Assembly: GCA_900088475.1 (NCBI GenBank)
Contig: FLMG01003376.1
Coordinates: 1 to 41,851 of the forward strand
Reading direction: 5' to 3'
Origin: Hyphochytrium catenoides
Lineage: Eukaryota > Protista > Hyphochytriomycota
Length of the DNA: 41,851 nucleotides
Shown: positions 4,476-36,835 of the stretch, piece by piece
Position numbering within the stretch: the first letter of the stretch is position 1
Layout of the letters: each line of letters begins with the position of its first letter
Notes under the pieces: generated by a model
Told to the model about the DNA's origin: nothing
The model's input: only the letters and a program-made list of their open reading frames with translations
Database searches by the model: none
Position numbers and translations under genes: made by a program

Positions 4476-7400
4476 CTATCGCCTGTACCGGTGCGGGGGA
4501 GGAGAGACTCTTCTTCTCATATCTCTTGGGTTAGAATATCTCTCTCTTGAGGAGGAAGGCCGACGGTGGTACCCTCCTCGCCCGCCTCCACTCTGTCTTC
4601 CAGTGGAAGCGGAGCGGCTGGGCGGGTAGTGATGATGTGAAGGAGGAGGAGGAGGAGCGTTGCGATGGCCTTTTCGACGTGGAGAGGAGCTGCCATATCT
4701 TCGAGGGGGAGGAGGCCTTTCGCCTTAGGAGAGGAGAGAGTGTTGGAGGACGGAGAGAGAGAGAGAGAGAGAGTCAAAGACACCGGCATATGAAATGCGA
4801 GGGAGAATTAGTCGATCCAAAAGACAAGAGAAAATCAAAAGACAGAGCTTCAGGAGCGGATGAACCACAAGGGTGAGCCATCTCATAAGAGTCAGAGCTT
4901 AAGAGAGTAATGCAGAAGAAGCTTTGTACCTCTGACGGGGCTCTTGTCTCTCTCTTCTCTCCTAAAGTTTCTCTCTCTGGGTTCCTCACTGTCATCGTAG
5001 GGGGAATCATCCCCAGCCCCATGAGTAGATATCACTTCCTCCACCGGCGGGCTATAGAGAGCAAGAAGAGATGGGAGAAATTAGTCATTAGAAAGAGCTT
5101 GTGGAGAGAGTAAGAGAGAGACACACAGAGAGAGAGTGCGACATGATATGTGGGACTGCCTTTGAAAAGGGAGATATGGACAAATAAGCTGAATGGCTTG
5201 CTTCTCCCTCTGTCTGTCTGTCTTTCTCGCTCTGTGTTTGCCGTAGCATGAGCAACTTACCTATCAATTCTCTGTTCTGACTCCTGGGGAGAAGCGCCGC
5301 GCTGCTCTTGTGCTGTTGGAAGCGAAGAAGGTTCGTCTTCTGGCTCTAACTTATTGATCTCTTCTCTCTCTGTTGCTCTTTCGTCGTCTCCTTCTAGCTC
5401 AACTCCTTCCATCTCATCGACCTCGAAGTCTACCTCGTTATCCTCTACATTGTCGGTTTCCATCCGTCCCGACTTTCTTCCTTGAACAGAAGAGGAAGAA
5501 GAGAGACGAGGCCGTCTCTCTGTTTGGTCTCTACTCTCTCTAGAGGGAGAAAGACGCGCCTTCTCTTTCACGTCTGGGTCTTGGTCGGGTTCAATACCGG
5601 TTTCTCTCTTTGTTATCCTATAGTCTTCTTCCCGATCTTGGCTTCTCCTAACCTCTGCCTCTGGCTCGTGAGGAAGAGGAGAGACGGGACTTTGCTCATC
5701 TTCTCTCTTCGGCAGCCGAGGAGGAGAGGGCAGGGATGGAGCTGAAGGCTCAGGTCCGTTCTCGCTTCGTCTTCTTTTGGCAGGATAGTGTGCTGGGCTT
5801 TGAGACCTGGAGCGGCCTCTTCGAGAAGGAGGGAGAGAACCAGCAGGGAGAGAATGTGAATGAGGAGGCGCTCGTGGGCGCTCTCTCGAACGTGAGCGCG
5901 GCTCCTCTCTCCTTCCAGGCTGGCCCATTTCTCTCTCTCTTCCCCTTCGAGCATCTTCTTCTCTCTCCCTCTCGTATCCTCGAGGTGCCCCCTGCCAGTA
6001 TTGCGGTGGAGGCGGAGATCGTCTCTCTCCTGCTATTCTTCTCTCTTGGCCTGCTCTCCGTCTATCCTCTCCTCTTGAGCCTCTGCCGAAAGGAGAGGGA
6101 GAAGGAGAAGACTCTCGTCCTCGGACCCTTCCTACGTGGCGCGCAGGGTCTCTCTCCCTCTCCTGATACCGAGGAGGAGGAAGATGGCTCCGGGGTGACG
6201 GTGGTCTGGCAGCAAGTGGAGGCTGTTCCCGTCTCTCCCAAGAGCGAGAGCGATGGTGTGGCACCCGGGGAGGATAATCTTCTCGTCCTCTTCTTCCTCT
6301 CTCCACGTCGTTGCGTCTCTCCTCTCCTCTTCTTGGCAGCTCTTCAATAACTCCAGGCCTAGTGCTGCCCCGATGACGATCCCGCGACCTTGACCGATAG
6401 CCTTGGACAGGCCGCGGGGAACGAGGAGCCACGCCATCTCTGTGAGGCTCTCTTCCTCTCCCTTGTCCTTCTCTAGTAATCGATCCTCTCCCGTCCCTTT
6501 GTTCCCTCCTACTCTGTGCGTTCAAGTTGTCGTTTGAAGGGAACGGCAAGGCTTCTGTTCCTCCTTTTCTAACCTCTTCTCTCCTTACGTGACCCCCTGG
6601 TCCTTCAATGATGGAGGCTGGTCGAGGTAACAAGCCCTTTCTGTCCGCGTCTAACACTTCCCGTTCTTTCTCCTCTGCTCGTCCTTGATCGCGTGGCTCT
6701 CCCAGCTCGTCCAACCCAGAAGCATGAGGGCCGGCCAGGGAGGAGTCTTCCCAATCATCTGACAGGAGAAGCCCCATAAGAGCGCGGACCAAAGAGAGGA
6801 TAAAAGGTCGTGGCTAGAATGAATGACCTCTAGCGCCGAAGAACAGGCTGACAAAGGGAAGGAGATAATTTTCCCTGGAGATCTAAAGCAGCACGGTGTT
6901 ACCTTCCGACTCACGCAGGGCAGGCATCTGCGGAACCTTGTCATAGCTTGAGTCTGGGGAACCCTTGCTTTCTTCATCTCTACGTGCCTCTCTTTCCTCT
7001 CCTTCAACTCTGTCTTCATGGTCTGTGCGCTCCTCACTCTGCGTGACCACCTCAGACACCATACTTTCCCTAGTGGCCAAAGGCGCAGCTGCAGAGGTTG
7101 CCAGAAGAGGATTTGCATCCTCTCTCGTCCGAGATAACTCGACCCGCAAAGGTACATTTTTGCCGACAACCAGCTTATCGAGGGCATGCACGGCCTCTGC
7201 AGCATCACAGAAAAAGAAGGGAAGAGAGAGAGAGGAAGTTAGCCAGCCATCGGGAAAGTGCAGGACAGAGTTATAAAAGAAGAAGGAGGGCGGCCAAAAA
7301 TCTTTGACCCTCTAAGTCGAGCTGGATAGAGCCGACGCTGTAGAGGGACCATATGAGGAGGAAGGAGAGTGGCAGTGCAGGAGGTAGGAAAGAATGAACG

Positions 7401-9059: not shown

Positions 9060-10903
9060 AGAGAGAGAGAGAGAGCGTGCGCGCGAGAGAGAGAGGTGCG
9101 AAGGGCGTAAAGGGACAGTACAAGCTAAGCTGGGACAATTCAAGGACGACAGTCCGCAGGCAGCAGGATACCTTTGCCTCCTATCTGCTTCTTCAGCACT
9201 TGGACATCCTTCGCCGTGACATGACCATATTTGTTTAGAGTTGGGAGAAGATCTTTGGCGGTAGCGTCTCCAGGAAGAAGGCTAAGGAAGACAAAGCGCG
9301 TGGGTCTGGACGGCTCTTCAAGCTCTTTTTTACCGTTATCTGATGCCTCCTCTTTGACCTTCTTCTCAGGTCCTTTGGTCGTCTTTTCTCCGCCTGTTTC
9401 TCCCCTGGATAATGCCTGGTTTCCTTCAGGCCCAGGTCCCGGGCCCGGTAGCTTCGGGCGCTGGCTGGCATCTTCTTGTTTCTCGTTTTTGGCAGGAGGA
9501 CTCGGAAGGGGCTGCCTTTGCTGGGTACTCTTAGGTTCTGCTGGCTTCTGCGCCGTTGCTGGGGGAGGCTTGGCTGGGGGAGTGGCCACCGTGGTGAGGA
9601 GCGCCCGAAGAGAGCGCTCAATCGCCCTTGACTTCTCTTCTTTTAAGTGTGACGCCGCTATTGCTTTTACCTGAGCAGCCACAGAGCAAACACAGTCAGT
9701 CACATGAGGGGACTAATGAGCGAGAGAGAGCATCGAGCCGTCGAGACAATGAATGGAATGGCTTCGCTGACGACAAGTCCTTAGAAGTAGCCTGATCGAG
9801 CACAGAAGACGTATCCGCAGGAAAGGAGCGATACCAAGAAGCGTGAGTGCAGGGAGCGAGAGAGAGAGATAGCCTGATCGAGCACAGAAGACGTATCCGC
9901 AGGAAAGGAGAGATACCAAGAAGCGTGAGTGCAGGGAGCGAGAGAGAGAGAGAAAAAGAAGTGTAGGGGGAAGGAAGATGGTCAGGATGGAGAAACAGGT
10001 AAACGCCTGATACCTTGTCCCTGACATCATTCCCTGCTGCTGGTTCTCTGATCAGTGCAGTGATGGCTCGAATGGAATGTACGCGGATTGCTTGGTCATG
10101 CTCAGGACTAGCAAACTTCAGCAGGGCATCCACACTCTCAGAGATGTGCTCCGGGAACAAGGATATATGCTAATGTAGGAGAACGATCGCTTAGCGTGAG
10201 ACAGCGGACAAGAGAAAGAGCATAATGAGGGAGAACGTGGAAGTGTAGCAGTCCTGGAGGTCGGAGTAAAAAGGTGTATCTATAGAAGAGAAAGGGAGAG
10301 AGACTAAGAGAGGGCAAGAAAGAGACAGAGCGCATTGAAGCTAAGATAATAGCTTGGTCTCGGTGTTCTATCAGACAGATGCGAATAAAATAGTCTAGAG
10401 GAAGGTAGGTAGAGAGATGAGTGTCTTCTGAAGAGGACAAAACATTGCTGCTGGGCACTGAAGAAAGGCTGTAAGACCTTCGTAAGGATCTGTGAGGCTA
10501 CTCCGATGGTCCGGACATTGCTCTTGGCATCTATGTAGGGAAAGTAGTTAGAAAACTACGGAGCCTGACACCTTTTGTGACACTCCTGAGAAATAAGCAA
10601 GAACTGCTGAACGACATACGGAGAAGGAGCGAGAGAGAGAAATGCGGCGAGAGATGGAGCGAGAGAGGAGATAATGGAGAAAAGACTGATCCCTTCACTC
10701 GCCTTACCGACTGCATTGAGTGTGGATAATATTCTGCTAAATGCCTTGGCATGTTCTTGCCCGATCGTGCCTCCTTTCGGTCTTGATAGTGCTGTGTCTA
10801 TGGAATATAGCACGGTGATGGGATCTGCTAGATACCAAGCGGTGCGATGCATGCAGCCAATCCGAGAGGAGCAGTTCTTAGAGACGAGGAGGGAGTAACC
10901 CAT
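4476..10903 (-). CDS. ~1276-aa protein: API5-like helical N-terminus, three RRM-like domains, long RS/RE/P-rich tail (putative RNA-processing factor)
   Basis: Phase-consistent exons 10903-10900 (or in-frame read-through), 10827-10708, 10530-10478, 10169-10014, 9670-9172, 8796-8612, 8457-7889, 7530-7448, 7196-6903, 6758-5261, 5051-4930, 4723-4476. RRM1 has FVFLSLLP...CYAFVSYRTKEEARRAVSELKDFTLLNRKVNVNFS. The tail has RSRSRDR, RSRSWER, RGRSRSQSP and ends RRRVSPPPHRYRR*. Confidence 0.8.
9788..9951. repeat. Two near-identical 82-bp tandem copies inside an intron
   Basis: tagcctgatcgagcacagaagacgtatccgcaggaaaggag(c/a)gataccaagaagcgtgagtgcagggagcgagagagagaga starts at 9788 and again at 9870, with one substitution. 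Confidence 0.95.
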
Positions 10904-12994: not shown

Positions 12995-15900
12995 TCAGAT
13001 TTCCGCCTCCATGCTATCCAACGCCAATCGCTTTTGCCAGCGCAGCAGCACAGGCTTCGAGAGAGTCTTTAAAGTCCTTAAGCTCTGCTCAAAGCCAATC
13101 TCCCATGTGCTAATACCGTTGATCGTGAGGAGAATGTCTCCAGGGGAGACCAGAGCCAGGTCAGGATAGTTGCCTTTCCCTGTCAACCTGCTAACGACGG
13201 GCAAATGGCTGACATCGTCCTCGTAAAGAGAGAGCCCCAGCGGTCCTTGCAACCAGTTTGTGTTAAACTGCCCTTCCTGCATTGAGTTTGATCGCAAGAG
13301 AACCTCACTGTTAGGGGCTGAGGACTGGCCCTCCGTCGGCCTTGGAGCAAGTCCTCCTGCTGGGTCATAGGGCCGCCGGAACACTAGAGTTACTGGCTTT
13401 ACGGCCGAGCCTAATAAGTTAATGATCTCATCAAAGTTCTTCCCTTCTACGGCGCTGCCTCCAGCCCTGATAAGGAGATCTCCCTTGTTCACTTTACTGA
13501 TCTCTGGGCAGACAGACCGGCCAGTGAGCCTTCGCACGCAAGGAAGACCCGTAAGCCCGTCTTTTTTCATTGTGATACCCAGTGGCCCTTCCGTCCAGTG
13601 GAAGGAATATTCATCGCCAGGAAAGGACGGTGACGAGAAAGACGGAGTAGGAGAGGAAGAAGGAAAGGAAGAATGTATAGGGGGCGAGGGAACAGGTTGA
13701 GGCGGCATTGGAGCCGATTGCCGTGTGATGCTGATGGTTTGACTCCCGTCTCTGTGCGCTGGAGAGTTCTGCTGCTCGCCTCCATAGCCTCTGCTTCCTC
13801 TGCTAGGAGGTCGCTCAGATGTGTACGTAGAGGCCAAAGAAGATGCAGGAGGCGGTGAAGGAGAAGAAGCCACGGGTCCACCAAAGGCGGAAGCATAACT
13901 AGATGGTGGAGCTTGCTGCCAATCACTCTGTGAAGCGTAATGGGTTGACGTTGACTGATAGAAAGGAGAGGTTGAAGACGAACCCGTGAAATTTGGCAAT
14001 GGCTGCTGTTCGACCACCGAAGAGTAGGAGGGCTTCTCAACTGCAGAGGAGTAAGGAGGAGAGAGAGGCTCATAGAACGAAGACGGGGCTGCAGGAGGTG
14101 CATTCTGATAAGAAGACGGCGGGGTCTGTCCCTCTTTGAAAAAAGAGGATGAGCCCTTTCCTGTGGTCTCGAGGGCCGAGGCTGACGAGTAATCTCCGCT
14201 GCTTCCACCTCGAGACAACGCCGCAGTGCCCTGCATGCCTCCTCGCGAAGTCCGTCCTCCGCTGTGTCCTCTAGATAAAGAGGGCGCGGAAGAGGGTCCT
14301 GCATAGGCAGGAGAGTTCAGTGGTGATGCCTCACGCGTCTGGCGACTTTCAGGAGCTGAAGCATCATACAAGCTAGCTGCAATAGGGCCAGACAGAGATG
14401 ATGACAGATGCGTGGAGCCGGAAGAAGCTGGAAAAGCAGACGTCAAGGACGATGAGAGAGACCCCATGTCATTGGCCACAAGAGATTGATTTGAAGGAGA
14501 TTGCGAGAGGGGTGGCGCAAGCGTCGTCGCAATCTGGGAAGGACGGAGCTTCTGAAATCTCAAGATTATCGGCTTCTCCAGCTTAGCTAGAGATTCCATC
14601 ATCTCTGTGTAGCTCATACCAAAGGCAGACGTAGAGTTGAAAGAGAGAAGAAGGTCTCCCACAGCCACTTTCTCTCTCACTTCTCGTGAGCCCTTTCCTG
14701 TCAATCTTTTAACGGAGGCGGTGTGCCTCTGTTCATCTCTCTGGAAGGCAATGCCCAGCGGTCCACCGGCCCAGACCACGGTATACTCTTCTGCCCCGCT
14801 GTCAGAGGATGAAGATGCAGACCGCGAAGAGAGAAGAGAAGCACCATGGGATGTAGAGGTATATCCGCCCCCTGCTCCTGTTGCTTGAGCTGTGCCATTG
14901 AGCATATAGTCGCTGCCACCTCTTGAGTCATAGAAAGAGTCTTCTTTTCCTCCGCCACTTCTCTCTCTTTCAAAGCTATTCCTTTTGTGAGTCTGAGAGG
15001 GAGGGATGGGAGGGCGAGCGTGGGGAGAGACTTCTGGAGTGAGAAATGCTCCCTTTTTCGACGGAGAAGAGGGGATGCTGGACGCCGTTCCGTTCTCCGC
15101 CTCTCCATTGTTTCTGCTTGAGGCAGAAATAGCCCTAGGCACTGGAGAGAGATCCTCCCTAGGGGTTGAAGCTAGAGGAGAGGGACTGAGAGAGAGCTTT
15201 TCTTGCGACTGCTGTCTTCCATTTAAAGGAATTGGAGGAGGAATCTCAAGCGTCTTCAGGTTCTCCGCTGTCAGAAGGCTATCTGTCTTCTTTCTCGCCC
15301 CCTCCTGCCCTGAAGCAGCCCCAGCAGTTGCTGTCGCGGCAGCAGAGGACTGAGCACCTGCATCTCTTTCTCTTCTCCGCTCTCCGCCACTTCTGGACTT
15401 CTTCCCTCCGACTAATCGACTGAACTGCATGACGACCGGCCTCTGGTCAGAAGTGAGGATGTCGCAGACCGCCTTATAACCTATTTGAGAGCACACTTTG
15501 TTGTTGACTAACGTCAGGATGTCGCCCTGAGCTGCATGTTCCAGACCCGAACTTGTCCCTTTGCCTGTCAGGCGCTTGATCATGGGGCGAGAGTCCGCTG
15601 TCTTAGTAAGTACAATCCCTAGAGGCCCATCTTGCCACAGGACCGTGTACATTCTGACCTCTCCCTCTCCTGAGGAGCGAGAGGGCGATGAGCGAGAACG
15701 TGAGGAAGCAGAGTGCACGCGAGAGAAGCGAAGGATGACAGGCTTGGGCAGATCTCGGAGTAGCTTCATGCTGGCATCGAAGCCATTCTGCGCCGTAGAC
15801 TTGTCGTTAAGCGCGATTAGCTCGTCGTTGACCTTAACCACAGCGCGAATCGTCTCGCTGGCACGCTCTGTAACGACAAGAATGGCCGGAATGTTATTCT

Positions 15901-17041
15901 TGCTGCGGACGAAAGAGATACCGAGGTCTCCTTCAGTCCAGGTGACTGTGTATTCCTTGGGCTCAGGAGGAGGAGAGAGAGAAGGAGCCGATAAAGGAGC
16001 AGCCTGAAGTCCAGCGAGCTGCATATTCTGCACTTGCAGCTGCAGTGTCTGCTCTAATTGGGCTAAACGCGACTGCAAAAGTTCTAACTGCTGTGCCTCA
16101 ACACTCGTTCCTCCTCCTCGCCCGCCGCCTTCGTCGTCATCTTCACGGGGTCTTCGTGGCTTCTTAGGCTTCTCTTTCTTTGGTTTTCCTTTTGGTTTGC
16201 TCTTGGCCTTAGCCGCTTTACTAGCAGCAGCGGCAGCCTGCGCGGCTTGTGCGGCCTTTCGAGCCCTGACGGGTATGGATTCATCATCAAAGTCTTCGTC
16301 CGAATCTTCGTCGGAGTCGTCGGAATCATAGTCTGAAGAGCCTGTTTCATCATCCCATGCTGGGGAGAACAGAACACGAAGAGAGAGAGAGAGAGATGCG
16401 GTCAAAAAGAGGGGGCCAACACCAAGGATGGAGCTCCATTTCGAGCAACAACAGATGAGACACAGAGAGGAAGCGAACAGCGAGGTTCTCAGAGAGCTAA
16501 GATCAAAGCTCGGAGGTGCATTAGCAGTAAGAAAGAGTAATGACAACTGCAAAGCGCCAACGAGAGGAAAAGCTGTGCACTGATGAAGAAAGAAGAGCTC
16601 TGGAGCTTCAAAAACTTACCATTTCCATTGATCTTCGCGGTAAAGCAAGCTCTTCGATGATGGACAGCGTTATTCCTGAGGCAAGCCTATGGGTCGAAGA
16701 AGAGAGAGTTATCCAAGCTGTAGAAGTGGAAAGGAGAGAGAAGCCTCCACACAGAGCCTCAGACATCAATAACAGAAAAGAGTGACAAAGAGCACATACA
16801 TAGAGAGATTGGAAGAGAGAAAGCCGCCCAGAGAGGACGACAGAGCGCCAAGCGATCTACTCACCATCGTGCAGTAGTACACTGATTTGCAGTTGTTACA
16901 AGGAAAGTTAGCTCCCAGCTCCCCGCAGTTAGCACAAGCCTCAGACATCGAGGAGCGGCGACTAAGGTGTGAAGACGAGACACTCTCAGTGTCATCATCC
17001 TTCATCTGCCGCAAGGCAGCGAACAAATCGTGGTTTGCCAT
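12995..17041 (-). CDS. ~1202-aa MYND zinc finger + five PDZ-like domains, scaffold protein
   Basis: Exons 17041-16865, 16686-16620, 16359-12995, phases consistent. Spliced finger: CANCGELGANFPCNNCKSVYYCTM|ACLRNNAVHHRRAC. Five repeats of Y/F-x-x-x-W-x-x-G-[DP]-LG-[IL]...K/R-P-V/I-x-L-x-F/W separated by Ser/Pro-rich linkers. Confidence 0.88.
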
Positions 17042-19203: not shown

Positions 19204-22203
19204 ATGATCTCACAGTTCTACGTCCTATCTAATAGAGGAGATACCATTATCTCCAGGGACTATCGGGGTGACTGTCCCCGGAGGTCGGGAGAAATATTCT
19301 TCCGTAAGGTTAGTCGAAGTGTCCCATCGTTTCGGAGTGTCTCATCCTCTACGTTTCTCTTATTCTTCGTCCTCTAGACCTATGCAACCTTCAGTCTTAC
19401 TTTGCCGTCTACTTATACAAGGCAGAGACACCCTAATATACTTTCTTGGGTTGCAGGTGAAGTTCTGGGAGAAGGGCGATGCGCCGCCGTGCTTCATTGT
19501 CGATGGCGTGAACTACCTCTTCGTTAAGAAAAATGCCCTATACTTTGTGGCAACCACAAGGTACAGCTCCTTATCCTTCCACCTTCATGGATTTCTAGTG
19601 CGAGAGAGATCTACATCAGCCATGAGTATGTTCCTTGATTTCTTCTATGTATACCCTTCAACCTTCGTCCCCGTTGCTGTCTAGCCATAGCCACTTGATA
19701 ATCCTGTTCTTTGACAGATTTAATGTATCGCCGTCCTTCATTCTGGAGCTATTGACAAGGTTATGCAGAGTTTTCAAGGTGTGAAGCCAGGGATATGAAG
19801 CTTGTGCTCCTACCTATTCCCGCGTCTCACCCTCATCACTAACCCTTACTCTGCCCGCGGTCTCGCTTCTTCTTCTTTCTCTATGGCTCTCATAGTCAAT
19901 CACTATCTACGTCTTCTTTTTTGCTCCACCTTCTCTGACTCTGACCTCTCCCCCTATCGGTCCTCGCTCTTTAGGACTATTGCGGAGTGCTTAGTGAGGA
20001 GACTATCCGGAAGAACTTCATTCTAGTCTACGAGCTTTTAGATGAGTGTGTGGATTACGGCTACCCGCAGGACACCAGCACAGAGGGCCTTAAGGCACAC
20101 GTGCACAACGAGCCAATCCTCGTAGGAGCGGCCGCACAGGCCAAGACAGCAAACAAAGGAAAGCTTCTCAACCGTTCCACGAATATTAAGGCAGCGGCAG
20201 CAGTTAGGAAGCCGGTGGCGACGGGCCAGCAACGGAAGGCAGATGAGAACGAGCTCTTCTGCGATATTCTGGAGCGCCTTAATGTCGTCTTCAGTCCTTC
20301 AGGACAGGTTAGCAAGCAGTTTGAGGGAATGGACTCCTACGCCATGGTCTTATCGGTCTTTTTCTTCTTCTCACGTTCTTCCTCTTGAGCCTTCGAGATC
20401 GTATGGCACTGACGCGCGTCCTCATCTTTTCATTTGAACTGTCTCCTCGTCTGGAAGATGCTGAACTCCTCCATTGAGGGGCGCATACAAATGAAGAGCT
20501 ACTTAGCTGGGAACCCTGAGCTTCGGCTAGCGCTTAATGAGGATTTGGTTATTGGGCGCGGTATGGGAGGCTCAGTTATCCTGGATGACTGCAACTTCCA
20601 CGAATGTGTACAGTTGGACGAGTTCGAGAGAGACCGAGTCCTCATCTTCCAGGTAACATCTCTCTCTGGGTCGATACCTAGCTTCTTCCTACAGTTTCCT
20701 CTTTCTACTCATGTCTCTCCGATTACTCCTGTATTCAGATGATTCTCTTTTTACGTCTTGCTCGTGTGCCAACGTTCCTCTACTGCCTTGGCCGATGCTT
20801 GTTGTGGGAATCTACTAACCCTGTGATGCTCTCTCTCTCTCTTTCTTCTCTCTCTGTCTCTTTCACCTTCCCTTTCAGCCTCCAGACGGAGAGTTCACTG
20901 TGATAAACTATAGGATCACAGGAGAGTTCCGGGCGCCTTTCCGAATTTTCCCTTTCTTAGAGGAGCTCTCTCCCACGAAAGTGGAGGTACGACTATTGAG
21001 CACTTCCTCCCTTCCTCACCTTCATCTCCTTTCTCCTGCAATTAAAAGCAGAGCTCTCTCCTTCTTTCTCCTTCTCGTTTATTCCCTAGTGCTACCCTCT
21101 TCTCTTATTCCACTCTCCTCTATTTTGCCGTTGCCTAAACTGCCTTAGTCTAATGTCTGCGCTCTGGCTCTTGCTCACTCGCTTCGTCATTGCCATCGCA
21201 GCTCGTAGTGAAGATCCGCGCTGACATGCCCGAGGCGAACTATGGTGCAAACGTTATTATCAGATTCCCTGTCCCTCAGAAGACCGTCAGCGTTAGCTGT
21301 GATATTGGGAAAAATGCCGCTGGACAGATTGCAGAGTACAGAGAGAATGAGCATCAGGTGTGTATGTGTATGGAAGGGTCCATCTCCTCTCTCTCTCCCT
21401 TCCTCTCTCTCCTTCTCTCTCACGCTCTCGCCCTCTGACTCACACACACAGGCACACTTACACCCTTGTCGTTTCTAAAGAACCAACTGTTTACTCTAAT
21501 CCATAGAGGCTCTTTCAGCAAGCGCGCTCTCACTCGATCCCTAGTTCCACCTTGGCTGACTTTTCTTCTGTCTCTTTCGGACTCCTCTGCCCTCCCATCA
21601 GGTCCGATGGGCAATCAAGCGCTTCGCTGGTGCTTCAGAGATGACTCTGCGCGCTAAGATTACACTTTCTGAGCCTTCTCCCATGTGGAGAAAGGAAATT
21701 GGACCGGTTTCCATGAACTTCGAGGTCCCTATGTACAACGTATCGAATCTACAGGTGAGGGCGAGCGGACAAGGATGCTGACTAAAGCGGGAAGAGAGGC
21801 GAGGGAGAGAGAGAGAGGTGGCATTTCTCCTTTGGAAGCATTAGACCAAGAGAGAAAATCTTGGATGTAGAAGCTTCATGACGTAAAGGACGGCGAATGG
21901 TTTCAGGAAGACTCTTATTCTTAAAGAGATATTAGAGACTGACAGCGGAGGAATAGAGGAGGATGGCGGCGCAGGGAAAGAGCGCGGATAATTGGGGAGG
22001 AGGAAAGAGAGAAAGAGATGAAGAAGAGTGTCCCATTGCTTCTGAACAGAGAGTTCATAAAAGAGAGAGAGTTGTTTTCTGACAGCATTCTTTCCCAGGT
22101 TCGCTATCTGCGCATCCCTGAGCACGCTCGACATCCGAGCTACAAGTACAAGCGTTGGGTGCGATACGTTACTCAGTCTTCCTCATACATTTGCAGGCTC
22201 TAG
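19204..22203 (+). CDS. AP4M1: Adaptor protein complex medium chain, AP-4 mu subunit (439 aa)
   Basis: Exons 19204-19308, 19457-19560, 19718-19778, 19975-20307, 20458-20652, 20879-20986, 21202-21357, 21602-21754, 22099-22203 (1320 nt). Motifs: MISQFYVLSNRGDTIISRDYRGD, DYCGVLSEETIRKNFILVYELLDECVDYGYPQ, LDDCNFHECV, PPDGEF, and the end RWVRYVTQSSSYICRL*, typical of mu4. Confidence 0.95.
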
Positions 22204-22703: not shown

Positions 22704-25459
22704 TTAGATTTCGACGATCTCTGACTCTTCTTCAACGTCTTCCGACTCGCTAAAGCTGTCTTCCGCCTCAAAGTTTGGCTTTGAAGGCTCATGGATGAGC
22801 CTTCTCCCAGACCGTCCAACTCTCTTTCCCTCTCCTCTTTTCCTCAGTTCTTCCACTCGAGTAGGCTTCGGGCTTTCTGCTTCTGGGCCAGTTCTATGCT
22901 GACCCAAGGTAAAGGAGCCAGAGGATGATGCGTAGTCTCTCTCTACGATGTCGGACAATCTACCGCTCTCAGAGAATTCTCTTTCCGTCCTGTCTCTATC
23001 TCCCGCTCTGGCTGGGCCGTCGATATAGGGAGACGGCGCCTTGGGCTCTTCATAACGCCGAATAGAAGACTCTCTGACGCTGTAGAAGGACTCAGTGGAC
23101 TCGAGAGGGTGTAGAGCGGGTCTTCCTCTCTCTCCCCGGATCTCCACTTCCCGCTCCCCTTGCTCACTTAAGTATCCGGCGGAAGGAGGAGAGGCTCTTC
23201 GGGTTGTGATGGGGCGAAGGATGAGAGAAGGGTCAAACGCTGGCTCTTCTTCCTCTCTCTCCCAATGAAGGGACGGAGCTGCAGTGTAAAAGGACGTAGT
23301 GTCTGACACTATGCTGCTGTCATGCGGGGAGGGGAAGGAAGGCAGACTGGTGCGACCAGTAAAGTCTGAGCAAGAGAAGAGAGGGATCAGCCATTGTCCA
23401 AGAATGGAAAAAGCGGACGTAGGAAAAGGACGCAAACGAGAGAAAGAGGCCCCCACAAGGCGGAGAAAGGAGAAAAAAAAGAAAGAAAGAGAGGAAAGGG
23501 GCAGGGACTTAATATTTACAGAGAATAAGGGGCAATGGTGAGCCTATCTAACGAGACAAACAGAAGCGGGAGAACGGAAAGAGATTAAACGTGGGAGAGA
23601 AGGGATAAGAAGCGAGGGAGAGGAGAGAGATAGGAAGAGGCAGAGAGAGAGGCAGCGGAAAGAGGAAGGGGAAAGAGAAAGGATCTTACCTGTCGGTGTT
23701 CTTCCTGGGAAGCTCCCGCTCTCAGAGCGCCTGCTCCCAGCGTACGAGTCCACTGGCTCCGTGCGTCTAAAGCCAGCTCCTTCTGAGACCCTAGAGCCTC
23801 CATAGGACTCGCGTCCATGTGAGAGGGAGGCACCACCCGTGAGCCGTCCGCTGTCACTTGCCCTTGAAGTCCCATCCAAAGAACCTCTCTCCCCAAGCCT
23901 TTCGCTACCTCTCTCCTCTCCAGGCTCGCTCTTGACGATGCGCTAACAAGCAAGACAGAATTAGCTAGCTGCGATGCAGTTGTAGGATTCTTACGTCTTG
24001 GCCCGCGACCCGTCTTCTGTGCGCCATCCACATCCCCGAGATAGACAGCATGGCATCTCTTTCCTTCTTGATCTACTTTACCTCTGGATCAAGTATTTCC
24101 ATAGCTTTCTCTCCAGAGTCTCCGTCGCTCGCTTTGCCTCTCTCTGTGACTGTGTCTCTCCCTCCTGGTGTCCCTCTCTCTCTCTTCCTTTGCCTGCCTG
24201 CTTTGGCTCCGCTATTACTCTCTCTCTCGTCGCTTGTGGCCATGCCCCATTGCCAGGTTTTCCTCGCACAGCCTTCACGGCTCAGCTCTTCGGCACTGAC
24301 CTCGTAGCGTTGTCTCAATCTACTTCCCCAGTCCTTGGCATCCTGGAAGCTCCGCCCACCAGTAGAGTCTCCTCTGTCTCTCCCTACGGACCCTTCCCGA
24401 GTAATCTGGCTGCCTATATCTACGGCCGCGTTCTGCGCAGAGACATGATAAGTTTAGAGACTAATAACAAACCCAAGGGATGGATAATGCAATGCAGACA
24501 GCGCCAGACCACGGAAAATAAGACAAGCAGAGAGAGACACACACAGGTACACCCACACAGCGGGAGAGAGAGAAAGAGGGAAATGCTCTTCAGGCTGACG
24601 AATGCGACATGCACTGGGGCAATGGCACGACCCAGAGAATAAGGAAAGAAAGGAAAGTACAGCGGGAGTTGGGCAAACTCTGTCCAGAGAAGAGAAGATA
24701 ACAAGAGAGAGACATCACCTTCGCATCTCTTCGAAGCTGGCTCTGAAGCGCCAGCGTGTGATACTTGGGACCCTCCGACATACCGAGCTGGGCCCGCAAC
24801 AGCTTCAAGTGTGAATGAATAAAGCAGAGCAAAGGAGACAATGTCCAGAAAGAGAGAAACAGCGAGAGAGACAGTGTGTGTGAGAGGGAAATAATAAAGA
24901 GGTAGACCGAGGGGAACAGAGAGCCGGAGAAGCAAGAGGAGACAAGTCCTGGTCATAAACGGCTAGAGAAGTTTGATCACTGCGGATGCCAGAGGCAACA
25001 CAGATTGGAGACCGTTGCGGTACTGACCAGCAGCAGGAAAGAAGACAGAGGAGCCTCATGAGCACAACAGCTGAGGAAAGCTGGAAAAGAGAGAAGGGAG
25101 AAAACGAGAGAAGATTGGAACAAGGAAGAGAAATGAGTGAGATGGTAAAATAAGCGAGAGAGAGAGAGAAAGAAGTAGAACCACACATTAATATCCTCTC
25201 GCGTCCTATCCATGTCTTCCTTCTGTTCTTCTTCTATGGCTTGCAGCTGAACTGTCTCGTCGGAGAGAGGGACAAACTCTTGCCCTCTATCTATTGGAGG
25301 GAGGCCGATAATACTGTGCAACTCATTGATCAACGTCCGTTTCTGAACCTCGAGCTGCTCAGATGATTCCGTAGCTACGAGTGGCGAAGGGNNNNNNNNN
25401 NNNNNNNNNNNNNNNNNNNNNNNNNNNNNNNNNNNNNNNGAAAGAGAGAGAGAGAGAGG

Positions 25460-25490
<31 letters not shown>

Positions 25491-27362
25491 CATGGACAGC
25501 GAAAGATAGAGAGAAAACGAAAAGTCTGTCCAAAGTAGCCCAAAGATTGAACAAAAGAGAAAAAAGAGAGGATCTGGCGATCTGACAGTTAAGACAGCCT
25601 ATAGGAGGAGAAATCTTATGTGCACGCAGGAGGAATGTATAGACAGAAAGAGAGAAGAGAAATTACAGCGGGAAGATGAGGCTTTCGCATTGAAGAGCTA
25701 GAGAGACAGAGGCCCAACCTTACCCCTTCTTTGCTCTTCTTTTCCAGTTCTTCTTGTAATCTATTCTTCTCTTCCAATAGAGCTTGAAACTCTTTCTCTT
25801 TCTCCTCTAGTCGCTGCTTTGCTGCTCTTTCTGCTTCTCTTGCTGCATTCGCCATCTTTTCCTGAATCTGGTGCGGGCAAGACACGCCGTTAGCACAAAG
25901 TAAAGTCTTTCGCCTTCTCTCTCTTTCTCTCTCTCTCACTCTCTCTCTCTCCCAATAGACACACACATTCTATTCCTTGTCAGCCAATGTTTCCAAAGGA
26001 GTCCAAGCGAGGAAAAAGTGAAAGCCAAAGAAGTAAAGAGACGCATGGAACAGAAGGAGAGAGAGGATGAGAGAGAGGAAGACAGGGACAAAGAAGAGAG
26101 CGAGAGAGACAAAGGGAGAGCGAGAGAGAGAAAGGGGTAGAGAGAGAGAAAGGGGTAGAGAGAGAGAGAAAATCTGTGTACCAGGACTTCCACGTTTTCA
26201 GGCGTCTTGACAGCTGTCTTGATATTTTTCATGTTCGCAAGCCACTTTGATAGAGCTTCCGCCCTATAAAGCAGTTCCGTCGCTTTGCGTTTGATGCTGT
26301 CAATGCGAAAGAGAGACGAACCGCCAGACGTCAGAGTAAAGAGGAGAAAGGGCATGAGGGAAGAGAATTTTAAGATAGAGACCAAGCCAAAGAGAAGACA
26401 GAGAGAGAGAGAGAGAGAGAGAGATGAGAAAAGCAAGAGAGAAAGAGAAGAACAAGGAAAGAGGTGGGCCGGGGTGAGGGTAGAAGACCGAGAAATCAAG
26501 GTCAGCACGCGGGATATTCTTCCCAGAATGTAAGGAGGAGAGAGAGAGAAGGTGGTGCGCTATAGATCGAGCAGAATAAGAGAGAAAGTAGAGAAAAATT
26601 GCAGGAGAGACCTACATTTCTTTCGTCCCTGGGTCTCTCTCCTCCTGCCCGAGACCTATCAGGATCCTTCCAGCATCGCAGTAGAGAGCGATTGCCTTGT
26701 CGTACTCTTTCTTCCTCTCTGCCCTGGAGGCAGAGTACCCGAGACGGAAGCCTGACTCCAAGACAGAGCGCTTCATGCCGTACCGGTCATCGGACATATT
26801 GATCTCATCCAGAGACGGAGAGGAGACTACAGCGGGGTAAAGGCAAGAGGCATAAAAACTGTTATTAACGCGCGAGAGAGACAGAGACAGAGAGANNNNN
26901 NNNNNNNNNNNNNNNNNNGCGGAGAGAGAGAGGAAGGACAACGTAACCTGGTAAAAGGAGGGGCAAAAGACCAAAAGAGAAGGAGGCAGAGGGTTCGACA
27001 AAGAGAGAAAACAACTGGAGAGACAGGAAGGATAAACCAAGCAATGGAGAGCAACACGACAGCAAGGAAAGAAGAAAAATCTAGGAGAGAGGGAGAGACA
27101 GGAAGAGAAGAAGCCCTTCTTCACTCCACCTGAAGAGGCAGAGTCTGAGCGTGGTCCAAGCTGGGGGACAGACAGAGAGGAAGAGAGCCTGCCACTGTCT
27201 CCCTGAAAGGCAATGGATCCAGACGCAGAGCGGGAGGGAGGCTGAGACGATGGCTGCGCCACTGACGCCGCATGGTAACCTACAGAGCTCTTCGATAAAC
27301 AAGAGAAGAGGCAGGATGAGCATTCCAGAGCAGATAAGAAGAGAGAAAGAAGAAAGAAAGAG

Positions 27363-27393
<31 letters not shown>

Positions 27394-28357
27394 GAGAGAA
27401 GATGGGAACTCTAGCCAAGAAAGAGAAGGAAGAGGTGTGAATACGAGCAAGGGAAAGATGAAGCGCCGAGGCAAGGAGAGAGAGAACAGACAAGAGAAAA
27501 CGCCAAATAAAGAGACAATGAGAGATAAGAGAGAGGATAGGGAAAGAGAGGAGAAAGAGAAGAGGGAGAAAGAAGGGACTTACTGTGGGCGCAGTGGGCG
27601 GAAGTGACCAGGAAACTTGGGGGCTCGCTTGTGGTGCTGGAGGAGGTGGCAGAGGAGAAGAGACAGACGTTCTGGAGACCGAGAAGGAGCCAGACAGAGC
27701 CGCCAGGCGAGCTGCCAGATCATCATTGGGACTAACCAGATGAAGACGAAGAGCAAGAGAGAGAGAGAAAAAGAGAGAGAGAGAAAGATCAACAAAGAAA
27801 GGGAAAAACAAACAGAGAACGCACGATGTCAGAGAGATAGAGGCAGAGAGAGACAAGGAAAAAAAGAGACAGAATGATAGAGAGACATCCGTAAGCGAAC
27901 GAAGTCTCAGATAGATCTTGCAGCTTTCAGAGGAGCGAGCAGGAAGAGGGAAGAGCTAAAAGCTAGAAATAGCAGTAACCTGGAGAGAGCACACAAGAGA
28001 GAGAGGGGCAGAGAGAAAGAGAGAGTGACTGACAGACGGCCAGAAAGAAAGAGAGAGAGAGAGANNNNNNNNNNNNNNNNNNNNNNNNNNNNNNNNNNNN
28101 NNNNNNNNNAGAGAGAGAGAGAGAGAGAGAGAGAACGACACAGAGAGACCGACAGAGAAAGCAGGGAGAGAGAACAGAACAGAGAAAGAGAGAGGGTGAG
28201 AGTGGAAGAGAGCTTGAGAGTCTCTCCTTCCTTACCCCGCAGTGGGGACGGTTGGCTGTGGTTGAGGCGGAAGGGGAGGCGGAGTGGCCGCTGGTTGTGC
28301 TGAAGGTCCGCTCCCGGCCTGCAGCGCCTTCCATCGCTTCATCAACTCGTCCTCCAT
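22704..28357 (-). CDS. MIT-domain protein with N-terminal MIM1-like helices, coiled coil and disordered Ser/Arg/Glu-rich tail (~740-815 aa)
   Basis: Exons 28357-28236, 27731-27584, 27289-27130, 26826-26616, 26296-26182, 25867-25724, ~25374-25187 (junction unresolved next to an N gap), 24802-24719, 24432-24301 (or 24079), 23942-23690, 23365-22704. MIT-like three-helix segment: GFRLGYSASRAERKKEYDKAIALYCDAGRILI...KEIIKRKATELLYRAEAL. Confidence 0.75.
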
Positions 28358-30276: not shown

Positions 30277-31176
<900 letters not shown>

Positions 31177-35365: not shown

Positions 35366-36835
35366 CTAAGATAAAAGAGTGAAGACAACGAAGCTCAATA
35401 GTGATACTAGCGACAACGTGCTCACAAATCTATGGGAACTAGGGCTACTGCTCTGATCTGTGCCGCCGCTCTGTCCCTTGTCATTCACTCGTGCTACGTT
35501 AGAGCCCGAGGACCCCACATAGAAGTGGAAAGAGGAGTCTGCAGGCGGCATAGGAGTGACCGGAGGCCCATAGAGCTTCTGGAAGTCTTTGATATACTGG
35601 CGCGTAGGATATTTTGGTGGGTCGCATCCAATGTTAATTTGTTTGACTGGCTGATAGATCCTGACATAGTCCACAGAGAAGACTGCCGGTAGCGTGGTCT
35701 TTTCAGGTCCTCCAGCCCAAGAGGTGGCAGATCCCATGGCAAAGTTGATGATCATGGTAAGCGGCTCCTCCGGAACGAGACGCTGCTGAGTGCATGCCAG
35801 CGTGGCGTTTGTAGGGTCGCAGTATTTGCCCAAACTCTCTGCCGTCATGCCAATGATCAGCTTGTCATTGAAGAACATTTTGATCAGTCCCTTGTCGCCC
35901 GGGACCCACTCGACAACGTAGACATTCCACGCATAAATATCCTCAGGCGTGTAGTCATAAGATGCCGTCACAGCGTCAGTAAAGTAAGTCTTGACGTCAG
36001 TGTTGCCATAATACTGAGTGTTTCTTGCGCCAGGGCCCATGGTAATACCCCGATACCAGGATCCAGGCCCGTTAGGCACCTTCGATACCGGAGTTGTGAC
36101 CGTCTCAGGGCGGTAGTAGAAAGGAATGGAAGGCGCAACTTGGTAAGACATCACTACGAATTCTGGCTTTAGCGTCCAGCCCTCGAGAAGGTCAATCTCT
36201 GGAGCTCCCCTACCCTGGTTGGGGTTTAGTCCGTGCCCAGGGTTAGCGTTGCAAGCGTTAATCTTTTGCTGTTTCTTCGATATTTCATCGCAGGAATTAT
36301 AGCTGAATGGCCACACATTCTTCGTGCTCTCTTCAAATTGTGCTCGCCCTAAGTTTCCGATGGTCCAGAGCGCAGGCCAGACACCTTCACTCTTGGGCAT
36401 GTTAGCCCGGATGCTCATCACACCGCCAGTGAAGCAAAACTTGTTCCATGACTGGATGTGCGCACCGGTGTAAAGCTTACCGCCTTGTGCCTTCTCTGTC
36501 ATCGTCATGCGCAGCGCCCCACCGTAAGTCGTTACCGCGTCTGGAGACATGTACTCCTGCGCCTCATTTGTGACATCTGGCTGGTCAAGTGCCGTCCACA
36601 TCTTATCCTTCCCGTTTTCAAAGCGTCTGTTGTCCTTATTGAACTCATCAGAAGCGACCAGGACATACTCTTGATTGAATGAGGTCTTGTACATGTGAGC
36701 CCCCGCTGGTGTGTCAGGGTCAATCCAAAACTTTAGGTTCTGGTACGCCGCAGGGTTTAGTTTCGAAAGCTGCGCGCTTGTGCTTGCGGCGCCTGCCAGA
36801 GCTAGCAGGCAGGAGACAGCTAGCTGGGCCTTCAT
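35366..36835 (-). CDS. Beta-glucan synthesis-associated KRE6/SKN1-like GH16 protein (489 aa), signal peptide and hydrophobic C-terminus
   Basis: Single-exon ORF. Likely start MKAQLAVSCLLALAGAA. Motifs: WIDPDTP, LVASDEFN, QSWNKFCFTGG, GVWPALWTIGNLGRA, catalytic GRGAPEIDLLEG, VPEEP, VDYVRIYQ, GCDPPKYPT. Ser-rich spacer followed by a hydrophobic tail. Confidence 0.93.
   Translation of the reverse strand: MKAQLAVSCLLALAGAASTSAQLSKLNPAAYQNLKFWIDPDTPAGAHMYKTSFNQEYVLVASDEFNKDNRRFENGKDKMWTALDQPDVTNEAQEYMSPDAVTTYGGALRMTMTEKAQGGKLYTGAHIQSWNKFCFTGGVMSIRANMPKSEGVWPALWTIGNLGRAQFEESTKNVWPFSYNSCDEISKKQQKINACNANPGHGLNPNQGRGAPEIDLLEGWTLKPEFVVMSYQVAPSIPFYYRPETVTTPVSKVPNGPGSWYRGITMGPGARNTQYYGNTDVKTYFTDAVTASYDYTPEDIYAWNVYVVEWVPGDKGLIKMFFNDKLIIGMTAESLGKYCDPTNATLACTQQRLVPEEPLTMIINFAMGSATSWAGGPEKTTLPAVFSVDYVRIYQPVKQINIGCDPPKYPTRQYIKDFQKLYGPPVTPMPPADSSFHFYVGSSGSNVARVNDKGQSGGTDQSSSPSSHRFVSTLSLVSLLSFVVFTLLS

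Follow-up and report, generated by a model that had tools for sequence, protein, structure and literature searches.

A predicted MIT-domain scaffold of Hyphochytrium catenoides with two candidate MIM1-type helices

In every case found in the literature examined here, MIT domains and the MIT-interacting motifs (MIMs) that they read are located on different proteins, with the motifs on ESCRT-III proteins, ZFYVE19 or Vfa1 and the domains on VPS4, spastin, LIP5 and others. A full-text literature search for intramolecular pairing of MIT with MIM1 found no case. A locus of Hyphochytrium catenoides raises the question of whether a single chain can hold both partners. The locus lies within positions 1 to 41,851 of contig FLMG01003376.1 (assembly GCA_900088475.1), the 41,851-nucleotide stretch of DNA that we refer to as the window. 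Here, one minus-strand gene of 11 exons (28357 to 22704) would encode a scaffold of 733 residues with no enzymatic domain, in which two tandem modules would be followed by a Ser/Pro-rich linker, an MIT domain, a charged helix and a Ser/Arg/Glu-rich tail. In each module, which would have an exon of its own, a linker of about 13 residues would join a short amphipathic helix of MIM1 type to a polyproline tract. The reading that we favor, tentatively and at a little less than an even chance, is that of an orphan scaffold of the ESCRT-III/VPS4 network that would serve both as an MIT receptor and as the carrier of two MIM1-type ligands.

Gene model and exon structure

The CT-rich minus strand contains few stops, and open frames by themselves are therefore weak proof of coding; the gene model was built from splice sites, phases and composition instead. 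From 28357 to 22704, the 11 exons form 733 codons without an in-frame stop, compared with 20 and 30 stops in the other two frames, and GT-AG borders are present at 10 of the 10 introns. When exons 1–6 are concatenated, their 300 codons contain no stop and the remaining two frames contain 9 and 7, respectively. The last five exons were added downstream by phase-tracking. The start ATG (28355–28357) has A at position −3 and G at +4, with an in-frame TAG four codons upstream, and the predicted gene most likely continues to the stop at 22704–22706. The first-pass annotation had given the span as 26182–28357; the features inside it were placed correctly, while 26182 turned out to be the end of exon 5 and not that of the gene. 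The predicted exons are as follows:

28236–28357, minus strand: exon 1, residues 1–40 plus 2 bases of codon 41; guanine-plus-cytosine (GC) content 0.66 versus 0.47 in intron 1
27584–27731, minus strand: exon 2, residues 41–90; paralogous copy of the exon 1 module
27130–27289, minus strand: exon 3, residues 91–143 plus 1 base; Ser/Pro-rich linker
26616–26826, minus strand: exon 4, residues 144–213; predicted MIT helices 1 and 2
26795–26797, minus strand: ATG of Met154 within exon 4, an alternative start
26182–26296, minus strand: exon 5, residues 214–252; predicted MIT helix 3, then a short linker
25724–25867, minus strand: exon 6, residues 253–300; candidate coiled coil
25187–25357, minus strand: exon 7, residues 301–357
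24719–24802, minus strand: exon 8, residues 358–385
24301–24432, minus strand: exon 9, residues 386–429
23690–23942, minus strand: exon 10, residues 430–513 plus 1 base; Ser/Gly/Arg-rich
22704–23365, minus strand: exon 11, residues 514–733 plus the stop; Ser/Arg/Glu-rich tail

Exons 1–3 form repeat-free islands with a GC content of 0.61–0.66 among microsatellite-rich introns with a GC content of 0.44–0.48, the introns being full of (GA)n/(CT)n. Each of these three exons starts exactly at ATG or after AG and ends at a GTAAG-type donor. A codon score, which is weak because of its small training set, was best or tied-best for the model frame in exons 1–7 and in the last exon. Exon 3 had the highest score among the exons in the model frame (0.20 versus −0.15 and −0.23 in the other frames), and in exon 1 the model frame tied with another frame.

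Two alternative borders were rejected: an exon 3 acceptor at 27279, which breaks the frame into exon 4, and an exon 7 acceptor directly after the preceding gap (tag, 25375–25377), which in phase 0 leads to a stop after 14 codons. The exon 7 acceptors at 25357 and 25354 retain the best-scoring frame; together they form a tandem (NAGNAG-type) acceptor, gag-cag (25354–25360, minus strand), whose two sites are both in frame and differ by one Gln. A separate observation concerns positions 26615–27955 of the minus strand, where the scarcity of stops on the CT-rich strand leaves one frame open for 447 codons, across exons 2–4 and the two intervening introns. Gene callers based on open reading frames would be expected to report a false protein of 414 residues at this position.

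All three runs of N in this stretch are intronic and lie beside (AG)n microsatellites, two of them within 26182–28357:

28065–28109, no strand: gap 1, in intron 1, inside an (AG)n array (27996–28064 and 28110–28202)
26896–26918, no strand: gap 2, in intron 3, adjoining (GA)n at 26874–26895
25392–25439, no strand: gap 3, in intron 6, adjoining (AG)n at 25443–25490

The coding sequence of the model is untouched by the three gaps, and the flanking exons are phase-compatible at each. Exons 1 and 2 flank gap 1 and encode related modules, which argues that the join across this gap is real.

The gaps and the permissive strand raise an alternative to the full-length model, in which exons 1–3 are non-coding (exons of the 5′ untranslated region, a mis-scaffolded join over gaps or spurious frames) and the first residue is Met154, close ahead of an MIT domain that would be N-terminal as in VPS4, MITD1 and NRBF2. 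Met154 does lie 9 residues ahead of the first MIT helix, and gaps do separate exon 1 from exon 2 and exon 3 from exon 4; open frames are cheap here, the exon 1 codon score is tied, and the splicing of exons 1–3 is a prediction from sequence. Nevertheless, a start at Met154 would leave unexplained three GC-rich, repeat-free islands with exact starts and GTAAG-type donors, whose phases chain stop-free into the MIT frame, as well as the clear preference of exon 3 for the model frame and the relationship between exons 1 and 2, which exists only at the protein level (see below). Moreover, with the exon 3 donor unused, the frame still reads open into exon 4. We consider this alternative to be decidedly improbable.

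The MIT domain and the chain behind it

The region encoded by exons 4 and 5, already assigned to the MIT family in the first-pass annotation, is very likely an MIT domain, judging from three kinds of similarity. Exon 4 alone matched the Pfam MIT profile (PF04212) over positions 1–47 of 66 with an expect value (E) of 4.7e-5 and 23.8 bits; this score falls below the curated threshold of 30 bits, as would be expected of two thirds of a domain, the other 19 positions being on exon 5. In an Atlas feature search with 69 exon-4 residues, MIT clusters shared 213 features and reached a score of 0.95, and a common family or clan (MIT-type) was indicated by all of the ten best matches that bear a family. 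Exon 5 opens with IKRKATELLYRAEALSKWL, which reads as a helix with the RAE signature conserved in MIT helix 3 and directly follows the loop EERDPGTKE. An AlphaFold2 model of exon 4 alone contains two long helices (13–30 and 34–61) at low confidence, with a predicted local distance difference test (pLDDT) score of 66. Sequence searches of the PDB with exons 4 and 5 returned nothing meaningful.

The best explanation is a predicted canonical three-helix MIT bundle at approximately residues 163–236, with helices 1 and 2 at 26621–26761 and helix 3 at 26230–26295 (minus strand). The Leu and Glu of the exon 5 helix align with what we take to be L64 and E68 of VPS4A. L64 of VPS4A is a residue of the MIM1 groove, and its mutation blocks MIM1 binding (PMC11218997).

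Behind the MIT domain, exon 6 encodes a Glu/Lys/Arg/Ala-rich, proline-free helix with a single Gly at its very end. The predicted charged helix that follows the MIT domain has approximately 60–130 residues and is probably a coiled coil, and the Ser/Arg/Glu-rich tail of about 350 residues, which ends in the acidic sequence ...EEESEIVEI, is probably disordered. Exon-by-exon comparison with Pfam found no other family in any exon piece and thus no ATPase, protease or Snf7 core. The earlier description of a chain with a coiled coil and neither ATPase nor protease domain therefore agrees with the Pfam results as regards the enzymes; a charged, proline-free helical stretch is indeed present, and the coiled coil itself is a candidate.

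The order of MIT domain and coiled coil, together with the lack of an enzyme domain, is the layout of NRBF2/Atg38 (PMC5103362, PMC12758336), and the protein might accordingly be a very divergent NRBF2/Atg38-type subunit of the autophagic phosphatidylinositol 3-kinase complex I, its N-terminal helices having no relevance to ESCRT. An NRBF2_MIT cluster did appear in the Atlas search (rank 27, score 0.85). However, exons 4 and 6 had no match to PF17169 or PF08961 at E up to 10, whereas PF04212 was found; the model has its MIT domain away from the N-terminus; its length is 2.5 times that of NRBF2; and the searches gave no linking relative. Such an origin appears very unlikely. One further observation bears only on this alternative: residues 601–612 (23080–23110, minus strand) form an acidic/Ser-rich stretch, ESTESFYSVRES, in which F-x-x-V follows acidic residues in the general shape of an Atg8-interacting motif. 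Fission-yeast Atg38 has an Atg8-interacting motif (PMC7595586).

The duplicated N-terminal module

Exons 1 and 2 each encode one MIM1-like helix that is followed by a proline tract, and the placement of both in the first-pass annotation was confirmed:

28319–28354, minus strand: MIM1-like helix 1, EDELMKRWKALQ, residues 2–13
28244–28282, minus strand: polyproline tract 1, PPPLPPQPQPTVP, residues 26–38
27692–27727, minus strand: MIM1-like helix 2, NDDLAARLAALS, residues 43–54
27617–27655, minus strand: polyproline tract 2, PLPPPPAPQASPQ, residues 67–79

The MIM1 consensus, reportedly derived from the Vps4 MIT structures of Obita and of Stuchell-Brereton in 2007, is (D/E)xxLxxRLxxL(K/R). Within the 733 residues, the core LxxR[LFWIMV]xxL is found at just two places, 5–12 and 46–53, both times as LxxR[L/W]xxL: LMKRWKAL after EDE in motif 1 and LAARLAAL after NDD in motif 2, each with at least two acidic residues in front. 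The number of cores expected from the composition of the protein is 0.078, and two or more cores were obtained in 0.27% of 20,000 shuffles; two cores that each have at least two acidic lead-in residues were obtained in none of the 20,000. The first-pass claim of two MIM1-like motifs holds in that the helices are non-random and agree with the consensus in the Leu/Arg core and in the acidic residues ahead of it; the terminal K/R is missing from both, and motif 1 departs from the consensus at its W.

The two modules also resemble each other as a whole. The polyproline tract starts 14 residues past the last core Leu in both copies, and the peptides encoded by exons 1 and 2 can be aligned over their full length (Smith-Waterman score 56 versus 36 ± 6 for shuffles, p = 0.0055). 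A duplication at the DNA level was sought and rejected, the sole match being a weak one of 22 nucleotides. An alignment that exists at the protein level without a DNA repeat argues that a module of helix, linker and polyproline was duplicated long ago, with one copy now on each exon; exons 1 and 2, as modeled, are a duplicated helix-plus-polyproline unit. In an AlphaFold2 model of exon 2 alone, the only helix spans residues 44–53, at low confidence (pLDDT approximately 60).

The motifs are N-terminal (2–13 and 43–54) and not in the C-terminal tail of an ESCRT-III protein, as in classical MIM1. The MIM1 of ZFYVE19 lies outside ESCRT-III and binds the MIT domain of VPS4 (PMC12884770); the tail location is therefore not obligatory for a functional MIM1. 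In other respects ZFYVE19 and the protein described here differ, as set out below.

The resemblance of the proline tracts to MIM2, which had been suggested along with the motifs, is weak. The core of MIM2 is defined as hydrophobic-P-x-hydrophobic-P, to which x-x-P-hydrophobic-P may be added (PMC8970359), and acidic residues lie in between (PMC11218997). LPPQPQPTVP fits L-P..P...V-P, but its inner hydrophobic position is taken by Gln and acidic residues are absent; tract 2 fits less well. Proline-rich sequence matches such patterns trivially.

Several observations weigh against the reading of these helices as MIT ligands on an MIT chain. The closing K/R of MIM1 is absent from both motifs (Gln13 in motif 1, Ser54 in motif 2), motif 1 has Trp at the usual position of the second Leu, and in motif 2 Asn replaces the canonical acidic residue. 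IST1 carries Phe where motif 1 has Trp. The hydrophobic moments of the two helices do not stand out within this protein (70th and 36th percentile), and the AlphaFold2 models cover single exons only, with pLDDT 60–66. No orthologue that might share the motifs was recovered in the searches described below. At the level of the gene, all three minus-strand frames are largely open in the introns, and for the joining of exons 1–3 to the MIT exons we infer splicing from the logic of borders and phases.

The same shortcomings feed an alternative in which the gene model is right and the helices are not MIT ligands. The protein would then be an ordinary MIT adaptor recruited by ESCRT-III; the short helices of its disordered N-terminus would be generic ones and, like the proline tracts, would either lack a specific partner or serve proteins of the SH3, WW, EVH1 or profilin type. 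Proline runs of the PPLPP kind are often bound by other domains, and exon 2 had no family or feature match; the missing terminal K/R of both helices, the non-consensus Trp of motif 1 and the modest hydrophobic moments point the same way. On the other side, two LxxR[L/W]xxL cores with acidic lead-ins are very improbable from composition, the helices have been retained in a duplicated module, and they share the chain with a domain that reads such helices. This alternative is a serious one, although we rate it as somewhat unlikely. Overall, the architecture is unusual and the motif statistics are solid; that the helices bind an MIT domain is inferred.

Relatives, known systems and a proposed role

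Searches for relatives of the protein were blank at the level of close homologs. No relative of the MIT exon was found by a word search against proteins of 246–782 residues or among JGI metagenome contigs, and word searches with exon 2 (E up to 10) and with the last exon also gave none. A phmmer search of exon 4 against 1.84 billion representatives returned no relative but eight matches that we regard as TPR-repeat noise: the two inspected were TPR-repeat proteins sharing KKEYDKAIA, and all eight had 4–9 matched stretches. An Atlas search of exon 2 gave uninformative scores below 0.8. An exact look-up of the neighboring KRE6-like protein in a public gene collection found no record, and thus no annotated copy of the locus. 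A query of 69 residues needs approximately 37 bits in a library of that size, so that orthologues below roughly 35–40% identity would be missed; the blank searches therefore indicate that there is no close relative, not that there is no relative at all. With that sensitivity, the suggestion of a possibly undescribed module is supported, as no described relative was found.

Among known systems, the IST1 tail, ZFYVE19/ANCHR, the group of Vfa1, Vps20 and pUL71, and plant PROS come closest in working principle, and NRBF2/Atg38 and MITD1 in architecture. In none of them is an MIT domain combined with a MIM1-like helix in a single chain. The C-terminal tail of IST1 resembles the modules in having a helical (Type 1/3) and an extended, proline-containing (Type 2) MIT-binding element, and these two elements, which a short linker connects, are able to bind a single MIT domain jointly (PMC9477494). 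However, IST1 has an ESCRT-III core, no MIT domain and C-terminal motifs with the extended element first, whereas in the protein described here the motifs are N-terminal, the helix comes first, the unit occurs twice, the MIT domain is on the same chain and no Snf7-type core was found.

ZFYVE19/ANCHR carries several ARLAAL-type repeats, which are much like the NDDLAARLAAL of motif 2, and likewise presents its MIM1s on a scaffold other than ESCRT-III. It differs in having a FYVE-type zinc finger and no MIT domain, and neither exon-wise Pfam comparison nor the exon 2 word search detected any sequence relation. In yeast Vfa1 and Vps20 and in human cytomegalovirus pUL71, a helix and then an extended proline-bearing stretch bind the MIT domain of Vps4 (PMC11218997). 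There, the helix directly adjoins the extended stretch, and the latter occupies the helix 1/helix 3 groove; in the protein described here, the two are set about 13 residues apart, and the tracts lack the acidic residues and the Val/Leu positions of MIM2.

PROS (plant positive regulator of SKD1) carries a MIM-like region. It is comparable as a lineage-specific regulator of VPS4/SKD1 outside ESCRT-III (PMC12051064), but it has no MIT domain and no detectable similarity to the protein described here. NRBF2/Atg38 shares the order of MIT domain and coiled coil and the lack of an enzymatic domain (PMC5103362), yet it has no MIM-like helices, is much shorter and bears its MIT domain at the N-terminus, and no match to an NRBF2 profile was found here. 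MITD1, which self-associates as a dimer, is likewise an MIT protein without enzyme activity. It is recruited by ESCRT-III tails and stands in the list of human MIT proteins in PMC9477494. Unlike the protein described here, it has a phospholipase-D-like lipid-binding domain and no N-terminal helices, coiled coil or long disordered tail.

Several other genes were observed in the window:

35369–36835, minus strand: SKN1/KRE6/Sbg1 protein associated with beta-glucan synthesis (PF03935, E 2e-77), encoded by a single exon; its start resembles a signal peptide and its C-terminal end is hydrophobic
30280–30612, minus strand: last exon of a complex I 20 kDa (NuoB/NDUFS7) subunit (PF01058, E 1e-26)
19987–20388, plus strand: open frame resembling the N-terminal part of an adaptor-complex medium (mu) subunit, with no Pfam match at E up to 0.001
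12995–16552, minus strand: open frame of 1185 residues with repeated modules of about 90 residues (YTV.W..GPLGI...RLTGKG...), the C-terminal copy matching Pfam PDZ (E 3.7e-8)
5257–6792, minus strand: Arg/Ser/Glu/Pro-rich, RS-domain-like frame of 511 residues without a Pfam family, downstream of the API5/RRM gene that the first-pass annotation had placed at 10014–10903

An apicomplexan origin, which the GA-rich introns might have suggested, was rejected in view of the complex I subunit and the SKN1/KRE6 protein; the former also argues against other myzozoans. The MIT protein, encoded about 6 kilobases from the multi-PDZ frame, has a hydrophobic C-terminus (...EIVEI) broadly of the type that PDZ domains read; any connection is speculation.

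Under the reading that we favor, the MIT domain would dock on ESCRT-III tails, as MIT domains do, and the N-terminal helices would fill the helix 2/helix 3 groove of some MIT domain. This is the groove occupied by MIM1 (Type 1) helices (PMC9477494). If the groove were that of the protein's own MIT domain, occupation in cis would result in autoinhibition, and occupation in trans in head-to-tail oligomers, helped by the coiled coil; alternatively, the groove may be that of VPS4 or of another MIT-bearing protein. In either case the protein would provide the ESCRT-III/VPS4 network with an adaptor that is switchable or multivalent. A more specific version, in which MIT receptor and MIM1 ligand on the single chain form a cis-autoinhibited state opened by ESCRT-III, or a head-to-tail polymer, and the two modules bridge ESCRT-III/VPS4 to other MIT proteins, seems unlikely.

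If the helices do not bind MIT domains, the protein would be one more lineage-restricted MIT adaptor with a disordered N-terminus. If they do, one chain with an MIT domain and a MIM ligand would represent a simple built-in switch or polymerization unit for ESCRT-III/VPS4. Binding of phosphatidic acid has been reported for oomycete MIT domains (PMC8851075), which are so far still without a clear protein ligand, and the protein described here would then provide a handle on the roles of MIT domains in this lineage.

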